A DNA stretch of 64,000 nucleotides from Zygnema circumcarinatum SAG 698-1b (taxonomy: Eukaryota; Plantae; Zygnematophyceae). How positions within the stretch are numbered: the first letter of the stretch is position 1; each line of letters starts with the position of its first letter. Shown here piece by piece: positions 18,538 to 64,000 of the stretch. Location: positions 511,873 to 575,872 of the forward strand of contig CM074816.1 in NCBI GenBank assembly GCA_037447605.1, read 5' to 3'. The notes below the pieces were generated by a model that saw only the letters and a list, made by a program, of their open reading frames with translations, was not told the origin of the DNA and did not search any database. A program made the position numbers and the translations under genes.

Positions 18538-30307
<11,770 letters not shown>

Positions 30308-31426: not shown

Positions 31427-34400
31427 TCACTTCTCCACCTCCTTGAAGGTCTCCTCCTCTTTTGAGGTCTCCTCTCCGCCAGCATCGGTCAACGCAGTCA
31501 CGGAACTTCCCAAGGTCTTCACATCGTAGAATGGATATTCCCGCACACCAGGGATCACTCTGCCGCCCAATGACCTAAATAGAAATTCCAAAAGTGCCCC
31601 AAGCAGCAGCCCTACTATGGAGAAACCCAATGCGAGCAAGAATGGAGGATAATCGAATGCCTCGAAGAATGTGACATGAAGGGCATCTGCATAGCTGAGC
31701 CCATTCTGCTTCACTTTCGTCCACCAGAACAGCGATGACAGGCCAACTAAGCATCCAAAGAAGGATGCGAAGGGTGTGACTACATACTGAATCGATCGCC
31801 CTGGAATGACTCCAAGCATGAGGGGGAGAGTGGAGGTAGTAGTGATTAGGTTAGCCAGCAAGAAGAGCTGCAGAATGTTGTAACCCTGGAGGGAAACTAT
31901 GATTGGTGGAACATTGAGCACCAACACCAATGCTCGAATCCACCAGAGGCTCAATTTCACTCCAGGGAAGAGGTAGGCAGTCAATGGAGCTACAAATGTC
32001 ACACTGATAGACTCTACAATAGCATTCTGCAGACTGTCGACTGCCGATTCCGACATAGTGACTGATAGCACGCTGACAATCACAAGAATCCATGTTTGGT
32101 TGTTAAGAAGGGAGAAAAGAATAGTGTTTCCAGTGTCCTCATCACTTGCAGGGCTCCACACACCACCCCATACGGCCAGAATGCCTGCACATCGCACCAC
32201 CAAAAGAGTCAAGTCATGCAGAGCAGAATCAAGAAAAAAGAACATGAGAAGTCAAACAAACCCTCTTTTAGAACGAACCAAAAGTTCTCAACGCAAGTTG
32301 AGCTATCTCTTTCACATTCAAGGCAAGGCTCTGAAGGATGCAACCGAAGCTGTCACCAATACTAGCACACCTCTGCTACAATATACTGTAATTTAGGGGA
32401 ATCAGATAGAAAAGAACAAGCAAGGCATGCTCGGTAGCAGTGACAAAAGAATAGAATACCTCCAAATCCAAAAAGAAAGACAACGACAGTGATCGCAATA
32501 GAGCCGAAAAATCCTCCCCAAAGAAGGCTTTTACGGTTTGAAGAAGCCCAGCACCTGCATGAGTGGCCAAACCCCTTCCAAGTAAGCATTTCGGAAACAT
32601 ATCGACAAAAAAGCATAGAAAACAGAAACCGGGTTATTAGATTAAGGCTCTCCACAAAATTAAAACCATTTTCAGCCTCGCGAACAACAACTGTCATAAA
32701 GATAAGCATTTCAGGGGGGCTATTAGAAGAGCCCTAAAAAAAAACGAGCTCCTTCTCTACCTCTGCCAAATGGCTTCGCTGAAGAAGCTCGACGATATGA
32801 GAGAGATGGGCATCACGGCAATTGAAGCGAATCCAAAATAGTTATCTGCTGAGAGATTATAAGGGGAGTCTTTCCCAGGCAAAGGGCCTAGCTTCCCATC
32901 GAACGTAACCGAAACATAAATAACCATGATGAGCACCACTATAATACTTAGAAGAGCCTGCAAGGAGAGCTCAGAAGTGGCAGTCAAACTGTGAAAGGGG
33001 TGCTAAGAGACGAATGAATGAATGAATGAATAAATGAATGAATTGCAGACTGAAAAGTAAAACCGCAATCGTAGAGAACTATTAACTTCAGAGACACAAT
33101 CATTCCCCCCACACACCCCACACGACAGCAAACGTTCCCACCAAGCAGCTTTCCAAGAATTCCATCCTAACGGAATACCTGTTTTGGGTAGCACCCCTGG
33201 TGGTAGCAGCAATGTACTGCATATCAAACACAGACAAGAAACAAACCGCTGACTGGCACACTCCCTTCGCAGGCATTACCCTGGTCAGGTGCCAAGGGTC
33301 TATCTCAGCCCGCTCGTCATACCTCACTTTGGGCCATACAGTGCCCCTGTGAAGGTCTGACAGAGCAAGCACCCCTGGTGCCAAGACTAGTCAGGAGAAC
33401 AGTATAAAAAATACCGTTGTACTTTCACTTTTTGAACATGGCTACGCTACGAAAACTTCATGAAGATGGACTTCAACAGAAAGTCTGTTATCTCACAGCC
33501 AAAAGCTCCGTAAGAACAAGGAAAACGAGCTACAGGAATGAGACGAGAGGGAGTCTAAGGGTTTGTATGCCACTCCCGAAAAAACCCTAACATTATGCGA
33601 AACGTGTAGGTTTAGGGCATCACACAGAGACCATTTACACTAGTTGAAATTATAACGGGCACTCACCTGCAACTGATCTGTGATAATTGACACATATAAT
33701 CCGCCAGCTGCAGTATACAGCATGGAGACTACTCCAATAATGACCACAATTGGCCATCGACTTGAATGTATAATAAGTTCGAATAAGTCGCCAACGGCTG
33801 TAAACTCGGCCGTGAGAGCTATCCCCATGTTGAACAATGTCAACAAACCCACGTAGCTTGCCATGAATCTGCCAAAGAGGGCATACATAATCATGAGCTC
33901 CACATTCTCACCACAAACTGTCCCAAAACTATGTTCCTATCAAGTAGTCACTCATACAAAGTCAATAAGACAGTAACATTAAGAAACCTCTCAGCTCCTG
34001 CAGGAGTACAAATATAGGAGTTTAAAGAACACCAAAGGTCATCAAACTAATGAGCCCAAACCACGAACCCTGTCAGGACATGGAGGACGCGTTCAATCTA
34101 TAAAATTAAATGAACGGACTATTGATAAGCAACATAAGATGATCGCACCGCCAGCAGAAGTTTTCATTTATCAAAAAACTTACCTGCCAAACCTCCTATT
34201 AACGAAGTCCGAAAGGCCCAACACATTCGGCACAAGGTCCTGAATGACGGATCCGAAATATGCGATCACTAATACGGGGAATCCCGCTGAAACGGCGTAC
34301 ATGACTGTGCCAAGCACTCCTGCAAACAGGCAGTAGCTCGGAGCGGCGAACAGAGCCCAGGACCCCATAGCTCCTGCATAGAAAGACCTGCAAAAGAAAC

Positions 34401-34832
34401 GTGCCTGTTATTACTGTCTGCTTGTAAGCAGCCTCGCATAGACCCCTCCATCTCTTAATCTCCATTTCCCTCTGCGCTCACTTACCACTCCATTTATCTA
34501 CTTCGCGTATTTTCTTTCTCTCCTCTCCTTGTCCAGGCAGCATCCCTGTCAGCTAACGGCTGGTTAACCGCCGCACGAAACCTACGTATGTGGTTCATGC
34601 AATTAAATGGAGTAATAAATAAGAAGCAACTGAGAAACCAGAGAGAGGAGAATGGGCCTCACCATGCGATGGTGAAAGTGCCCATGGAGCCGCGGGCCGT
34701 GAGGAAGAACTCCGGCGAGTCGGCATGGCCCTGCCGCTTCTCCCGCACCCACGAGTACGCGCACGCAAAGAGTCCAAACAGTACCACAAACGCCGTCGCC
34801 ACAGGGTACGCGATGTCCTCCAGCAACGCCAT
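31427..34832 (-). CDS. Sodium:solute symporter (SSS/SLC5) family transporter, similar to the fungal DUR31-type subgroup
   Basis: FFLTARGS...AWSF...MGSWALF, SDFVNRRFG, YTAAGGLYVSIITDQLQ, FSEAIWQRCWAS and SAVDSLQNA, with many hydrophobic segments; ATG 34832, stop 31427. Confidence 0.85.
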
Positions 34833-37101
34833 GGCTTCTCTCTCTCCTCTCCCTCTCCCACTCCCTCTCCCACTCCTGCAGAGGCTGGGCCGTACAAGTG
34901 GCTGTCCGTACGGTACCCTAGGGAGCGTCCCGTCAAGCCGTACGGACGGAGGTTTTGTCCCCAATGGCGGCCCGGGGGGGGCGGAGGGGGCGCCGGGGTT
35001 CAGCGCCGCCTTTGACGTGGGAACCAGTCAGCACGCACCACGTAGGGCCGGAAAAGCGGCGCCGCCGCGCTTCGTTAGGCGGCGCCTCTGCTTTCATTGG
35101 AACACGTGGCGGTCACGGAGGAATCAAAAGGCTATGCGCACACCTCCCACGTGTCGGTGCTCCCGTTACCGATCTTCCCTTAAGTGTGCTAGACGACAAA
35201 AATCAGAGGAGTCAGAGCCGACACTCGACAGGTCCGAAAACGACACGTGTTGAAGCGACAAGCCGCAAGTGCACGTATTTGTCGTTATTGTGACAATGTT
35301 TCGCCAGTGGTGCCACGTAGATAGATATTTGTCGTTTAGCGTTTTACCGTACGACATCACGTAGGCATTTGTACGAGACTGTATGTGAAGTGACCGCAAC
35401 GGAATCTCGCCGGATTCCGCAACGGGGTCTGCAGCGAGGTCAATGGGCCACGTGTCCGAAACTGCTCCAGTGAAATGTATGCATGCATGCATGGGGGTTG
35501 TCGTGTTGCTCCCGTCGTCAGGAATCATATCGAGATAAATCGTTAATGGTCGACATTATACACGACGATGTATCGTTCTCGCTATTGATATTTACGATAT
35601 CGTATTTGGGTATTTATTTTTATAATTTTGGGGAATTATGATCGTGGTTAGGGCATCCGGCAGCCGTGGACCGTTGGATTACTTTGGGCAGGAGTGCTCC
35701 AGGACATGCCACGTGTCCTGTAAAACGTGCGACCGCGGAGCTCTTTGTCAGCTGGCTTTCGCCAACAACTGTTTTTTGGGCTTTCACATGGATCGCCGCC
35801 ACGTGTCTCGTCGCTGAAATTTAACCGTTGAGCCGCGTGCGAGTTGTGTCACTTGTCCCCGAGCCCGTGTTCTATGTCAGTTGCCCCGTCACAGCAAAAC
35901 CAACGCGCCGTTGAACAGCCCAACAGGGCACGCCTCTGAACACCGGGGGGGGGGGCTGAAGGGGCTGTGCATCTCGAAGCGATGGGCGGACTGTCAGAGG
36001 GAGGCAAGCAAACCAAGGTCGAGGTCAGCAGAAAGAATCAATGGCGAGGGGACCAAAGTCGTCAGCAGAATTACAGCGAGCAGCAAAAGTGTGCACGCTC
36101 CTCACGACCAGCATCATCGCGGGAGCAGCAAAGCCCTCATGATGCCCAAAGCGAGACAAATTTGACGACACAAGTCGGATTTGCCAACACAGTCAGCCCC
36201 AAAAGAGCACCATCCATCAGAGCAAATTGAGGTGAACCCCACCTCTCCATGGGGGGTGGGCCGAGGGGGCACCACGATTCAAAATTCATTGTATGCGAAA
36301 ACCCGTTTACTGCACCCCCGACGAGAGGCTGGGTCCTTCAGCGCACAGCGAAGGGGGAAACAATAAGATTCGCGGAAGGTACGAAAGGCCAAGTTTTGTG
36401 ACCAATTGGCAACAAACGCTTGTTCTCCTCGCTTCCTCCGATTGATTGGGCGAGTTTTTCCGACAATCTCGAGTTCCTCGGATGGCATTGATGTCATGAC
36501 CACATGTAGAAATGGGCAACCCCGTGAAAAAAGAAACAAGTGACTCACAGATTAAAAAAAAAGAAGGCAACGCGCCGAACGCGACAACTAGGCCCAAGAA
36601 ACACAACGGCCCTAAGAAGCAGCAGCAGAAGGCGAAGGTCCACGTTGCAATTTCCGAGCAGTTGCAGCATGCACCCATCCAGCCACCCTACAGCCAAGCC
36701 CACCCTCCACATGCAGCCATGCCATTACTTCCGTGTTAAAGCACTCTTTGTCGGAATACATGCATCTGCATGTGTGCCGGATTCCTTTCCATGCATCCAT
36801 TCCATTGCTGCTTGAGGCCATACGGCCTTGCTTATCCGGCTTCGACCCAACCCGCTCTTTCCCTCCGAGGCAATAACAAAAGACTGAAGCCACTGTAAAA
36901 GAGTTCAAGGAGCTTGCATAGCGAATATGTTGGAGGAGGGGGGTGAAGGGGGGTGTGCCCTTTGCATCTTCACCTCCCTTCATCTTCATCTTCATTTTCA
37001 TTTTGCTTCAAGGAGTCGCTAATGGTCTACCCGCCTGAACGGCTTCAGGCGTTCCAAAGAATCACATGCAGCCCTTGCCTCTCTATGTCTGTTTCCCAGT
37101 G

Positions 37102-49252: not shown

Positions 49253-52200
49253 ATGCGTCTGCTTCCGCTCAAGGCCGCCACCGCCGCGCGTTTCTCGATG
49301 GCGGCCATGGCCACGGTGCAGGAGCTGCTTTGTCCTGCTGGAGGTGGAGCACGTCTCAGGCTCGCTGGGCACAGTGACAGGAGCTTTTTGAAGTTGGGAG
49401 AGGTGGCATCGCGGAGCTTGTCAAGGCTTCGAGTCTGCGTTGAGAGAGTACAAGACTGCAGGAATGGCAGTATTGATCGTAAATTTGTCCCTGAATTTCG
49501 TGTTGATGTTTCTGCCGCAACTAGGGTTCTCGATTGCAAGGGAGCGTACTGGCTTGGAAGTGCCAAGAAGGGTCGGTTATTTCACTCCGCTTCGCTTCTT
49601 CGATTGGGAGAAAATGAGGCTGGCTCTTGCTCAGCGTCGTATGGTAGCTCCAGAACTGAAAGTGAAGCAGGTATTTCAAGGGAAGAGAATTTTAACGGAG
49701 TTAGTGGAGGAGAGAACGAAGAAGAAGACGGTGGGAGGTCGTCGATGGCTGAGTATACGACGTCTCAGGAAGGCTCACAAGTTCTAATGAAGGATTTGAG
49801 CACTTCTGCAGACTCCAAGCAATTGAGACAACGGAAAACTGATAAGGAGTTGAACGAAAAAGATGATGCACAGGCAGCGAATGTTGAGAAAAGGAGGCGG
49901 AGGAAGAGTGTGCCGGAGTTTTCTGACCTGCGAACCGTGCCCGGCATCGGATTGAAGACGCTGGAGAAGCTGAAGGCGAAGGGCATTCTCGAGGTGGCTG
50001 GCTTGAAGCAATTATACTTGGAAAAGGCAAGAAGCTCCTTCATGCGTTCATTATATTCTTTTGGTTTTGAACATGAAGTCATTGGCTGCTGTTTCTTGGC
50101 CAGGTTTTGCATATATGATGGAATTTTTAGCCATGATTCATCAAGAGAAAGCCATGTCGCTTTGTTCTTTATGGACTGAAGGCCAGAAAGGACTCATGCT
50201 TGTTTTGCATTAAACTAGACTATTTGAACGAGTTTAGTTGCGGTTCTTCAAATTTCGCTTCAATAAGCATACAGTATCAGGTTTTGTGTTCATGAGTGAG
50301 TGTTGTCAATCGGCGTTTTCCGTCATTGATGGTTGTGATTTTTGTCCCGGAAAATTACCTTTTTTGGTTCCTAAAGTAATGCCTAGTAGCACCCTGGGTC
50401 TTGTGAATCTGCCTCAGGGAGTTGGCATTTGTAGTTCAGTGAGAGTGAGCGCTAAGAAAGTTTCTAAAGCTGATTTTCAGGTAGTGCTGTTAACAGAAGG
50501 GCTCTCTTCTCTTAATATATGGCTATACCGAATATGCCAGCAACGTCTACCCTTTTTCCTGGACAAACATATTCACTGAGAGTTTCGTTCGTCCTAAGTT
50601 GACACTTTTCAAACACCTTATGTTGTCCTGAAGTTGCTTCTCTCCAGTTTTATGATGGCGCTGGCAACAACTAGCAGTGCTGCTCCGTCGCATTCTGTAA
50701 TTTGAACGATTTTACGTCTCTCTTATTTGTCATTTAGGAACTCTAAGGCATTTCCTTGGACTGACTGCTTCTAATTGGTTACGTTCTTCATATTCCGTTG
50801 TGCAGTTTGGAGGAGATGGTAGCTCTGAGGAAATGGCGAAGTACCTTCGTAGTGATGTTGGAGTCATGAAGAACCATGCTGCTGCCATTGCCAACTTTGT
50901 ACGGAAAAAAGTAGAAGAAGAGCTGCAAGCTGCGGAAGCAAATGAAGGAGAAGGACAGACAAGTGCGAAGCAAAAGAAGCGACGTTTGACTTTTTGTGTG
51001 GAAGGAAACATCAGTGTGGGCAAAACAACCTTTTTGCAGAAAATAGCTGATCAGATTGTGGAGCTCAGGGATTTGGTGGAGATTGTGCCAGAGCCAGTTG
51101 GGAAATGGCAAGATATTGGCGAAGGGGGTTACAACATCCTTGATGCCTTCTATACTGACCCACGACGATATGCTTACACATTTCAAAACTACGTATTTGT
51201 AACAAGAATGATGCAGGAAAAAGAGAGCTCTAACGGTTTGAGACCCCTGCGGCTGATGGAGCGGTCTGTTTTCAGTGATAGAATGGTGAGAGCACTGACA
51301 GCCGAGCAGCATCCCCTTGCAAATGGAGTGGCTTTGTCGAGCTTGCAGTCATGAATGGTTTTGGACCCTAAAGCCTAGATTAGGATGCAGCCGGTATAGA
51401 AGCACTAAAAGGATGCACGCCCTTCTCTCACTTGGTCCACGGACGTAGTATCTAGTTATTTGAGTGTGCAGGATTATGAAGTTCACCCCCCTTTTTTTGG
51501 ATTCCTTCGCTATTGTGAAAGTTCTACAATGACAAATAGTCGAAACTTGTTACTTCTGGAGGGCTTTTGTTTTTCGCTATGCACGGATTTGGGAGGCCTG
51601 GGAGAAAGAATATTATAGGTTTTTTTGCCAGTTCAGTTCTGTCTTCTCACTTTCTGAATCACCCCGAGCACTCTCTAATAGAAGTGTCTGACTCATCACT
51701 TGAACTATGCCAACAGGTCTTTGTTCGTGCTGTTCATGAGGCCAAGTGGATGGACAGTATGGAGTTGAGTATTTATGACTCATGGTTTGACCCCATGGTA
51801 TCGACTCTACCTGGGCTTGTTCCTGATGGCTTTATATATCTACGTGCGGAGCCGGGTACTTGCCATAAGCGTCTGCAGACAAGGGCCAGGGGTGAAGAAG
51901 CAGGAGTAAGCCTAGAATATTTGATTGACCTACATGAAAAGCATGAGCAGTGGTTGCTCCCAGCTGAAAGAGCGGGAGGCAGCAGCGGCCTTCTGGGAGT
52001 TAGCCAGTGGAGGGAAAGCGAGCTCGTGAAAAAGCCTGATAGCATCGATGTAGTTTCTCTAAGAGGAGACCATGTACACTCCTCCATTCGAGAGGTGAGT
52101 CCATGTGCAAACTGCAGAGTTGTAATATCCGGAAATAGGGACTCTGATGCATGATTAGCGCATGTACAGTGGACCTGAAAGTTGATATGGTGCTATTCTG

Positions 52201-55850: not shown

Positions 55851-56934
55851 CATGCACCAATGACTCCTTTCGTGCATTCCATGATGCCAAATGATGGTTA
55901 TTTTTTCAATTTCCAGCCCATTGAAATTAGCAACAAGGAAGACCTTCTCCACCACCATTGACAACCCGTCCTGCCGATTTCCTAGCTCTGCAAGGGCACT
56001 AAGTACAGGAGGGCCCATCTTCTAAGGGCCTCAGACCCCTCCCAACCCTCTGTCTGTTGCATTTGCACTCAAGCAGGAGGAGAGGTGGAAGGACCGAGGC
56101 CTCCAAACTCTGCCGGACGAGTACCACTCACTGCCCTGCTATGTCTTATAGGACACAGAGAGAGGAAGGAAGAGAGAGAGAGATAGGGGGAGAGAGAGAT
56201 AGGGGGGGAGAGAGAGAGAGAGGGAGAAGAGAGAGGCTACATGAGCATGCGCTCCATACCTTGAAAGTCCACTTCTTCCGTCATTCATTAGTCAGCTGAA
56301 TTGAAATAGCCTCCGCCTTGGTTAGCAGCTCTCCACAGCTTCCCATTCAGGTGGCCCCATATGGAGATGCAGCCTTGAGGATGAAAGAGACAGAGAGAAA
56401 AGGAGGGATCGGCTTCTCAGCCAAAGTTGCGTTCCGATTGGAGTTCTTCTTGACCTCCTCTTTCACGAAATCTGAAGTTACTGTACTTAATTTCAGATAT
56501 TGAAAAGACTGTCTTGCAGCAGCACCTAACCCCTCCTCTATAATAACTCGCCGTTTTTGCTGCGTTTCCTACTGCATATTGCTCAACTAGTCAGAGAAGT
56601 CAACATCACATTGCCAAAGACACCCCCAGGTCGCCTCACTGCACCTGATGATTCTCTCCGGCTGCTGAGTCATGCAAAAAGGATTTCTATGTCCGTACCT
56701 ACTTTCCACAACAGCGCTCAATTTCCATGCTAGAAGCTCTTGGAGTCCCAACAGTTCCATTTGGTGGCAAGTAGTCCTTAAATGACTATGCACTTCCCAA
56801 CGGACTTATGCATTTGATGGGACTCCTAAGAAAGTAACCGCCGGATGGCATTTGTACAGACACAGGAATGCGAAATCTTATCCTGTCCAGCGGAAGGACG
56901 ATCCTGTACATGGCTCCGCATTGAGGCATGTACA

Positions 56935-59057
56935 CTATTGGACGGTGCAGCTGCATGCTTGCCCATTGTCGCTGTCGTCGTCTTCAGACTCCCCAGACTC
57001 ACTGTCAACATCACACGGGAAACAGAAAAGTGTCACTTTCAAATGCAGCATCGTTTGGAAACATGAGCCACTGAGGAGTGTGCTTCTGCCATCTGCTTTC
57101 CCTCACTATTCAGAACATGAGCCAAATCACATCGATGTTCCAACCAAGGACGAGCCAAGGAGGAATCACCCCATACAGTACTCCCAACTAAGGAGCACCT
57201 TTCTAAGTGGTGGTCCCTCTCCAAATGATCAAAGTTAAGAATTGTAACTGCATCCCCTCTAATTGGCCGCCAATAATAACTGCCGTATCATCAGACAAGG
57301 ACTGACGAAATGTCACATATACATCCGTTCTAGTGCGCACAGTTCAGTCTTCTGCAATACTTGCCGATGCAGTTTACAATATCGCATGCGATGCGTGAAG
57401 CACCGCACATGTGAGTCGCACGTACTCACCCCCTAACTTGATGCCTCTGTAAATGGCTCTCTCGCCCATTACTAAATCATTCAATCACATCCACCGTCGG
57501 GAACATTTAAAAGCGGGAGTACTGTATTCTGGATTGTGGAAGGGAACTCCGATGTAGGCAGCTCAGAATCCAACAGCTTATATGGGGAAGTCTAAGAGGC
57601 ACATATGAAGCGGCACTCAAGCATCAGACATTTGAAAAGGCTTTTTGCAGTCATCACAAAGCAAAAAATCAGCTCAAAACTTTCATCGAACCAACAAGCT
57701 TCTCGGACACTCAGAGCTGGAGACGCGTGCTTTGCACTTCTTAGCAATTAAATCTTTTGCATCTTATGACCAGCTGGATAAGCTCGTCCATCCTTGATCA
57801 GAACAAAACTTAGCATGCTGACCTGCAATACTGTTTCAAGGTGGGCGCTCGAAAAAACCTCGTAATTCTGCGGTATGTACTCAATGAACAGTAAAAAAAA
57901 TCTCCCTTATAGACGACCTCATGCATGTCAGCTGCATAATCCCCTCTCTGATGGCGCTGGTTTAACCGGTTAACAACCAATTCACTCTAGAAGGAATGCT
58001 GGCTGAGAGGGCAGGAGAATCTAATACAGCTCACAGAGAGACGACAGAAAAGCTATCACGCATCGCACCGCAAAAGATTGGAAAATGAAAAATTGTGTGA
58101 AAATTTTCCACACACGGACTGAGAGCACAATTAACGCACTCCGGGATGGCAAGCGCAATCCTGCTTGCAGGCAGAAAGTGTGTATTTAAGAGAATATGGC
58201 CCTTTTTTGTTGCTTTGAATTTGGGAAGACGAGCAGGGAATAGCCTAATAGCAGCTTAAGGGGACACGCACAAGTAACTAATCGGTATAGGCCTTCACCC
58301 AAGTCGGGCTGCTTCTCTGTCACTTACTTCCGCCTAATTTCCATCTTTCCTTCAGGATGATATGACGACGGATGATATGACGACGGATGATCTGACGAGT
58401 ATCAGAGAAGGCAATGCTATCTTCCCCCTTACGTCGAGCAGCTAGCCGCCCTACAAACCCTAAAAACATTCATAAGAGAAAAAACTTGGAAGCAAAGGTC
58501 GGCCTGAGAACGTTTTGCAGGATTGAAAGCAGATGGCTTAACAAAAAGAGTGCCGGTGCCCTGAATGCAGGCTCTCACCTTGGTTCAAATTCCTTCACAA
58601 ACGTAAGACTTCCTCCATGTTCATCCGGCCAGCGTACTGTCCTTTTCGCGCGGACTCTCTGCTCCTCCTCTCCCTCCGGCTTCTCTGCTTCAACGCCTCC
58701 CAACACTGGGCCTCCCCCTCTCCCCAAAAGCACAGCTTCCGCTATGCCATTGTGCTCCAAGTCCAGACCGACTTCCAAACCCGGCTCCTTCCCCCCCGGA
58801 TCAATGAAAAATGATGCATCGCCATTTCCAGCGTTGCCAGCATGCCCTGTCGTTATCGAATGGTTTTCAGAATTCGTGTGCGTATGCGATGCAGGGAGAT
58901 GTATGGTCTCTGAAAAACAATTGGATACGCTTGAAGAAATAGGTGCAGACGGGGCATCAACTGAAGTTTTAGGGTTTGCTGGGGTGTGCTGCGGAGGCAG
59001 CGACTCTTGCGGAGCCAGCGGAGCCCCCTTTAAGGGCGAAAGCCCCGGATGTTCCAC
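56935..59057 (-). CDS. Small (181 aa) disordered protein with a conserved VxW-D-x2-G-x2-L-x2-V-EFEPS motif and C-terminal CaaX (At1g22790-like family)
   Basis: Exon 1 59057-58579 ends ...KRTVRWPDEHGGSLTFVKEFEP-AG|gtgag. Exon 2 57001-56935 (gacag|T GAG...) gives SESGESEDDDSDNGQACSCTVQ*. Total 546 nt. Confidence 0.85.
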
Positions 59058-60564
59058 CTTGCCGGCAGCAGGGAGGGAGGCTAAAGCCTAAGGTTTGAAT
59101 GCTCCTTTGCTGGCTACAGCGCTTTGCCTGCCTCTCTCGCCCTCTCCTTCTCTCCCTTCCTCTCTCTCTCTCTCTTTCTCTCTCTCTCGCTCCCCCTCAC
59201 TCTTCCCGACAACCTCCAGCCTCAGCTTGTTTCCTCTTGCGCACCACCGAGCAGAATGTAGAGTAAGAAATCTCTTCACATGTGAGCTCACGTCGAGTCA
59301 ACCGGCATAGATTAGGGTATGGGCGGGGAGAAGATTGGCGAGCCGGGGGGACACCCCCTTCCTGGACCGGGCTTCATACGTGAGATGCGTGCAGAATTCT
59401 TAAACGTCTTGCTGCATGAGTGCTGAAAGGATCTGAGCTCCTACAGCACCACCTCGGGCCCTTTTCCCCCATACGAGCTCTTGCTCGCTCTACGAGCTCC
59501 CAAGCTCTCGAGCTAATCCATATTTGAGAGCAGAAAGGGAATGTTGAAGTAAGCAGCAGCGAGATGCAGTGGATGAGTCGGGGCGAGACCTCACTACTGA
59601 GCGACTAACAGGGCTGTGACAGCGAGAGAGAGAGCGAGAGAGAGAGAGAGAGAGAGCGAGTGAGAGAGGGAGAGGGAGGGAGGGAGGGGAACTTGAACGC
59701 TGTCTTCTATTGCCTTTCTAATAGTCCACGCATCTTCCAATGAGAATTCGCCACGTTTGCAGACTTGTCCATGTGGCGAGCTCTGATTGCATGATGCTAG
59801 AGGAGTGAGCGCGCGGGACTTGGACAGGAAATTTTGCGATCGCAAAAAAAAAAAACAGGGAGCGCCAAATTTAAAAGTTCACCGTCCAAACATGGCATGC
59901 CACGTATGCAAACCTTTGCACGTGGCACTCTGCGATTGGCAGTGATGCCAATTGCGGCCCTCAATTGGTTCCACTGAAGTTACCTCCACCCTTCGAGCCG
60001 GCGGATCCACCTCGACCTGCCAGGTGGCGGCCTCTGGGGAGACGGGCCGGGGGGCCCGCGCCACGTGCCGGGTTCTGCGGGCAGGCTCATTCTGCCGGGT
60101 GGAACAGGCCGAGTGGAATCTCGTCGGCGTGGATCCGAACCATTGATCTGGCGCTTGGTTTACCCATCAGTAGAGCACCTCCCAACAGCGTTTCGCCACG
60201 TGTTTCTTAAATTTCTTTGACTCCTAAACACTGGCATGCTGCCTCTCCATGTTACCGTATGTCCCACCACTGTGAGGCCACTCACTGCCTTTGGCAGTTT
60301 CGCATAGGAAGTGGGCAAGTTCATTCTCTGAACATGTGAGGATGATCATGTTTTATAAAGGGGAAACAAAGAGATACAATTTACTGAAGTTGATGAGAGA
60401 GAAAGGGTGCATTGCCATCCACTTGTCCTCAACTATACAAAATTTAGGTTAAGCGCATGTTTCATTCATTTCAAAGCACTGTCATTGCCTCAGTGCTTCT
60501 TCCTCCTCCTCCTGCTCAAGAGGGTGCTCATCCTTTTGCTCAAAAACCCATCAACGGAGGGTGC

Positions 60565-64000
<3,436 letters not shown>

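Follow-up and report, generated by a model that had tools for sequence, protein, structure and literature searches.

A putative exon in the streptophyte green alga Zygnema circumcarinatum carries a predicted PP1-docking string in the GM/PTG contact register, with a candidate CaaX tail downstream

The window analysed here is a 64,000-nt stretch of the Zygnema circumcarinatum SAG 698-1b genome (GCA_037447605.1, contig CM074816.1, forward-strand positions 511,873 to 575,872), and all positions below are those of the window. On its minus strand we find an open frame whose 3' end is a splice donor and which bears, near that end, a string laid out like the PP1-anchoring segment of the animal glycogen-targeting subunits, while a short frame ending in a CaaX-like box lies further downstream (Table 1). 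The string, the donor and both acceptors quoted in the original prediction are all present with the letters and at the coordinates it gave.

Table 1. Features of the locus, in positions of the window.
Feature	Position	Strand	Remarks
ORF ending at splice donor	58579-59057	minus	coding-like part about 58880-58579; no in-frame ATG
Best internal acceptor, ...ccaattgtttttcag/AG	58909-58935	minus	exon start 58909; possible true exon start
PP1-anchoring string KRTVRWPDEHGGSLTFVKEFE	58584-58646	minus	near end of open frame, before the donor
Splice donor AAG/GTGAGAG	58572-58581	minus	phase-2 junction; PWM score 6.1 (plant-type matrix)
Proposed intron, 1,577 nt	57002-58578	minus	Pfam-negative ORFs; Rfam-negative; holds a single 15-nt tandem repeat (58355-58398)
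Candidate last exon, (S)ESGESEDDDSDNGQACSCTVQ + stop	56935-57001	minus	phase fits; CaaX Cys 56947-56949, second Cys 56953-56955

Upstream of the locus lies a MutS2-like gene (60565-63690, minus strand, continuing past the window end), in which MutS domain V occupies 62914-63123 and the MutS2/Smr-associated SH3 domain 60568-60780. The locus itself is flanked by (GA)n/(CT)n microsatellites (59132-59203, 59624-59686 and 56171-56235); many more of these are found across the window, often in intergenic DNA, and they inflate ORF lengths on both strands. Other features of the window include a deoxynucleoside kinase (dNK) gene on the plus strand (50800-52154), one intron of which maps precisely to 51286-51716 (431 nt), and a multi-exon membrane-protein gene on the minus strand (31427-34964) with a Pfam-negative last exon of 272 codons and two donors, 34183 and 33666, that are among the strongest in the window. 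A stretch of about 1.7 kb at 22799-24562 consists of tandem repeats that leave several frames open on both strands. Their plus-strand reading is one of Pro/Ser-rich units (PSFKRITPTPSL, PSPPSRESLPPL) over up to 576 codons, which may represent an extensin-like wall protein or just a minisatellite.

The frame that contains the string extends without interruption from the in-frame stop at 59091-59093 to 58579, and a scan of its whole length from that stop to the donor found no Met codon. Codon usage was scored with a table derived from 12 long ORFs of the window, and Pfam support was obtained for 6 of the 10 ORFs scanned (dNK, GH5, MutS domain V and the MutS2 SH3 domain). On this scale the frame reaches +0.17 bits/codon overall, and +0.24 within 58578-58817, values that compare with 0.14-0.28 for the neighbouring, Pfam-supported exons used in training, with its 5' half weak at 0.10 bits/codon. 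Only this frame is positive, the other two frames and a 225-aa ORF on the antisense strand scoring zero or less. A single-sequence AlphaFold2 model predicts disorder for the exon (mean pLDDT 42), which is what one would expect of a protein with a short linear motif. At its 3' end the frame runs into a donor in the context CCA AG/GTGAGAG, with the GT at 58578-58577, and if left unspliced it would read AGG TGA and stop there. In the 128 kb made up by both strands of the window only 11 GT sites score 6 or more; the donor at the locus is one of them, and most of the others close long open frames of recognisable exons. By comparison, 0.23% of six-frame ORF ends sit on a donor-like site of this kind. 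Moreover, the intron-side bases of the donor (GTGAGAGC) are identical to those of the dNK donor at 51286.

From the coding-like frame and its strong donor we consider the ORF probably a genuine exon, internal or first-coding, of a spliced gene. On the opposing explanation the frame is non-coding, open by chance within GC-rich DNA (5' or intergenic) downstream of the MutS2-like gene, and the PP1 string within it is a coincidence that came of looking with many motifs in view. Such a view would accommodate the lack of an ATG, the weak 5' half and the fact that the opposite strand is open over 225 aa as well. However, a positive codon score confined to the motif's own frame, with the antisense ORF at 0, is hard to reconcile with it, as is the termination of the frame on one of the 11 best donors, and we regard the non-coding explanation as improbable, a judgement to which the database searches and the string itself also contribute (see below).

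If the exon is genuine, its 5' boundary may lie within the open frame rather than at its upstream stop. The codon score of the motif's frame drops below zero over about 58955-58895 and becomes positive again from about 58880, and the best internal acceptor falls inside this dip, which suggests that the ATG is found in an upstream exon. An exon start at 58909 is possible, and would place the ATG in a separate exon further upstream; when ATG-plus-donor exons upstream were enumerated, all had either weak donors or an exon of non-coding character. Two other accounts of the 5' end were rejected. A frameshift at the G7 run, which would allow a start at the ATG at 58843, conflicts with a negative codon score in the frame of that ATG and a positive one in the motif's frame upstream of the run. 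Likewise the exon is not the 3' part of the MutS2-like gene, which stops at 60565 after the SH3 domain (MSSS), and no Smr-like frame was found in the 1.4 kb that follow this stop.

The string had been singled out as conserved-looking, a description that our searches do not bear out, since protein, PDB and metagenome searches found no relative of any kind; conservation, by which short motifs are usually shown to be functional, was not found. Pfam gave zero matches for the exon, for the tail ORF and for ten minus-strand ORFs (45-68 aa) between 56590 and 58578, and Rfam had no family at the locus. No match was returned by word-indexed protein searches with the 160-aa frame and with residues 52-101 of a 101-aa piece, nor by phmmer against 1.84 billion representatives, in which the query itself was missing too. 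Searching all PDB chain sequences with phmmer at E values up to 10, using 61-aa and 26-aa queries, gave no match and retrieved neither GM, GL nor PTG. Metagenome DNA was likewise negative, whether scanned with the protein or with a degenerate DNA pattern for the string. The ESM Atlas yielded sub-threshold clusters of streptophyte 'hypothetical proteins' (0.81-0.89), a lead at most. The absence of any relative or self-match among so many representatives would fit the non-coding explanation; however, by exact look-up the protein collection also lacks six other ORFs of the window, and the neighbouring 327-aa ORF is matchless too, so these blanks are uninformative on annotation or expression and the missing self-match says nothing about this locus. 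The frame had further been assigned to a loosely annotated Arabidopsis family, 'At1g22790-like'; this membership is unsupported, though not refuted, and the gene code At1g22790 has no mention in the searchable literature.

The argument for PP1 docking comes from the string at the exon end. Its core is R-T-V-R-W, and counted from the Trp it has Asp at +2, Leu at +8, Val-Lys at +11/+12 and Phe at +14. With the preceding Lys the core (K-R-T-V-R-W) fits both the loose [RK]-x(0,1)-[VI]-{P}-[FW] pattern and the strict RVxF pattern. The original prediction named [RK]-x-V-x-[FW] as the docking motif, and taken alone such a core carries no weight, as cores of this type occur in the window at random frequency (loose pattern, 136 six-frame matches where random sequence gives 153; strict pattern, 13 where it gives 12.6). 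The extended string is another matter. The pattern [RK].?V.[FW].D.{5}L..VK.F has a single match in the window, against none in any of 300 random windows, and its analytic expectation is 2e-5 per window, a figure to be read with the pattern having been fixed post hoc, such that about 250,000 windows would be enough to give a handful of chance matches. A relaxed form of the extended pattern occurs 0.01 times per window, and a DNA pattern for the string has one match in the window and none in 100 shuffles. A search of the exon frame for two further PP1-binding motifs, SILK ([GS]IL[KR]) and MyPhoNE, found neither.

What gives the extended pattern its meaning is the set of contacts seen in solved PP1 complexes. 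In the GM:PP1 complex, V66 and F68 of 65RVSF68 occupy the RVxF groove, D70 forms a salt bridge to PP1 R261, L76 acts as a lid over an adjacent hydrophobic pocket, V79-K80 is the PhiPhi motif that pairs with PP1 strand beta-14, and F82 enters a pocket beside P298; the RVxF-to-PhiPhi spacer is described as the longest observed among PP1 regulators (PMC6235537). The PTG:PP1 complex is built similarly, with V85, F87 and L95 buried and F101 in a second groove, that is, with Val-to-Leu and Phe-to-Phe distances of +10 and +14 (PMC9582199). Seven structurally defined contact positions coincide in KRTVRWPDEHGGSLTFVKEFE, at exact spacing and ungapped, and this counts against a chance origin of the frame, even with the post hoc choice of pattern on the other side of the balance. 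The claim that the string matches PPP1R3A (GM) almost position for position is correct for these seven contacts, with Trp at the position of F68. It does not extend to the residues around them: Thr takes the place of the Arg right before the Val, with Lys-Arg immediately ahead of the Thr, and His and Gly replace F72 and F74. Because the extended register matches the GM and PTG contacts and is rare, PP1 docking is a good reading of the string, and it has stronger backing than the original prediction offered, the contact residues of GM and PTG both being kept in register. That the exon encodes a small disordered PP1-interacting protein is accordingly graded lower than exon status itself, and we favour it slightly.

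Where the transcript goes after the donor bears on whether such a protein could be membrane-bound. The candidate last exon is preceded by a well-formed acceptor (...ttgacag/ before 57001) with a branch-like TGAC, a pyrimidine run and the first AG; joined to the donor, the phase (AG+T) gives Ser, and the product reads SESGESEDDDSDNGQACSCTVQ with its stop at 56935-56937. The final C-T-V-Q is the C-terminus only with this candidate splice, 58579 to 57001. PRL phosphatases with CCVQ and CCIQ ends are farnesylated, and in H-Ras the palmitoylated Cys sits two residues upstream of the CaaX Cys. C-T-V-Q followed by a stop matches the rule for farnesyltransferase, by which X is A, C, Q, M or S (PMC3927097; PMC12609287). 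In the window, 13 of 4730 six-frame ORF ends (0.27%) are farnesylation-like and 2 of 4730 (0.04%) are of the C-x-CaaX form. The exon candidate scores +4.0 bits over 21 codons, which is equalled by 16% of open non-coding windows and stands at the 36th percentile of true exon windows, and so does not set it apart.

Nearer acceptors would give a different protein. Splicing to 58459, 119 nt from the donor, gives the tail ...EFEP-RVCRAASCST-stop, and splicing to 58391, 187 nt from the donor, gives RSSVVISSVVISS and a stop, both without a CaaX box. A soluble PP1-docking protein, made by such a short intron and with the CaaX-ending frame 1.6 kb away as a coincidence, is an alternative that we hold to be somewhat unlikely. 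In crude acceptor scores 58459 (4.33) and 58391 (3.88) both exceed 57001 (3.38), a verified neighbouring acceptor scoring 2.3; however, acceptor-like sites of comparable quality occur once per about 200-250 nt in the proposed intron stretch, so that the presence of such sites proves little. Intron length also speaks for the nearer sites: the neighbouring introns that could be placed exactly measure 144 nt (GH5) and 431 nt (dNK), and in the transporter and MutS2 genes the distances from one exon ORF to the next, mostly below 700 nt, suggest introns shorter than about 700 nt. Codon scores over 57100-58500 are negative in all three frames. About 60 ORF ends lie within the proposed intron, and the probability of a chance CaaX-like find there is 3-16% (0.03-0.16). 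Against the soluble alternative, the tail from 58391 falls inside a tandem repeat, in which the 15-nt unit GGATGATATGACGAC recurs 2.9 times at 58355-58398 and yields the SSVVISSVVISS reading that the original prediction had named as its alternative C-terminus, and a stretch like 56935-57001, which is in the correct phase and has an acidic Ser/Asp/Glu run together with C-x-C-a-a-Q, is harder to obtain by chance. Given a real exon, we put forward the lipid-anchored CaaX model tentatively, at somewhat less than even confidence. The full proposal of a membrane-anchored PP1 targeting subunit, that is, a disordered protein with the GM/PTG-type string alone, farnesylated and S-acylated at C-S-C-T-V-Q, is doubtful when all its parts are required together: its docking half gains from our analysis, while its anchor half hangs on a single candidate splice that needs a 1,577-nt intron.

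Taken together, these observations suggest a model in which the locus belongs, as one of its exons, to a spliced nuclear gene of this conjugating-type streptophyte green alga, and encodes a small, intrinsically disordered PP1-docking protein. A single uninterrupted string at the exon end would do the docking, with the Val and Trp of R-T-V-R-W entering the RVxF groove, the Asp at +2 pairing with PP1 Arg261, the Leu at +8 closing as a lid, the Val-Lys at +11/+12 adding a beta-strand to the PP1 sheet at the PhiPhi site and the Phe at +14 filling the second pocket. The binding mode would be of the GM/PTG type, without a carbohydrate-binding domain. The transcript is predicted to continue past the donor at 58578 into at least one further exon, and if this is 57001-56935 the protein would end in an acidic run followed by C-S-C-T-V-Q, a putative farnesylation box that offers another Cys for S-acylation. 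A tail lipidated in this way would hold PP1 at the membrane.

The model is at present a well-defined hypothesis about one locus, with no conservation found and an incomplete gene model. To our knowledge, few PP1 regulators are known from plants and their algal relatives, compared with about 200 in animals, and the docking mode of the glycogen subunits is regarded as an animal and fungal feature. If the reading is right, the lid, PhiPhi and Phe register of a streptophyte alga would provide a concrete, mutable handle on PP1 targeting in the plant lineage, particularly should the protein be lipid-anchored, and it would bear on whether the GM/PTG binding mode is ancient or convergent. Should the anchored-subunit version hold, docking of the G-subunit type would either be older than the opisthokont fusion to CBM21 or have been reinvented residue for residue.

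Among known systems the PPP1R3 subunits (GM/PPP1R3A and PTG/PPP1R3C) are the closest in the string itself, which keeps their register of V, W/F, D+2, L+8, VK+11/+12 and F+14, long spacer included. In proteins of the PPP1R3 family the anchoring segment is followed, towards the C-terminus, by a CBM21 carbohydrate-binding domain. One might on this basis take the locus for a true glycogen- or starch-targeting PPP1R3 member with its carbohydrate-binding domain in missed exons, and the register, with its unusually long RVxF-to-PhiPhi spacer, is what invites the idea. However, Pfam scans of the exon and of the ten downstream minus-strand ORFs detect no CBM21 and no domain of another kind, the PDB search with phmmer shows no statistical sequence similarity to the family, and the locus belongs to a plant-lineage alga, whereas G subunits are animal or fungal. 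Lacking both CBM21 and detectable homology, the locus falls outside the PPP1R3 family despite the match in the anchoring segment, and true membership seems to us very improbable.

In size and disorder the predicted peptide is more like the SBG1 family, Inhibitor-2 and RSS1/TdRL1, which are short disordered proteins that bind plant PP1 (TOPP) in an RVxF-dependent manner (PMC13652734; PMC12109034). The rice PP1 binder RSS1 carries KTVIF, a plant precedent for Thr before the Val with the same Thr-Val arrangement as at the locus (PMC12109034). There are also differences. SBG1 and SBG1L1 have a SILK motif upstream of RVxF (PMC13652734), whereas the locus frame is without [GS]IL[KR], the exon has no Pfam match to inhibitor families I-2 and I-3, and for none of SBG1, Inhibitor-2 and RSS1/TdRL1 has a CaaX box or a GM-type lid/PhiPhi/Phe register been reported. 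For the anchored form of the model, with the candidate CaaX exon included, the architecture would instead be that of TIMAP (PPP1R16B) and MYPT3 (PPP1R16A), animal PP1 regulatory subunits held at the membrane through C-terminal CaaX prenylation (PMC6737228). These are large ankyrin-repeat proteins of the MYPT family, whereas the algal locus would join the same two ends, PP1 docking and a lipidated tail, through a disordered peptide only.
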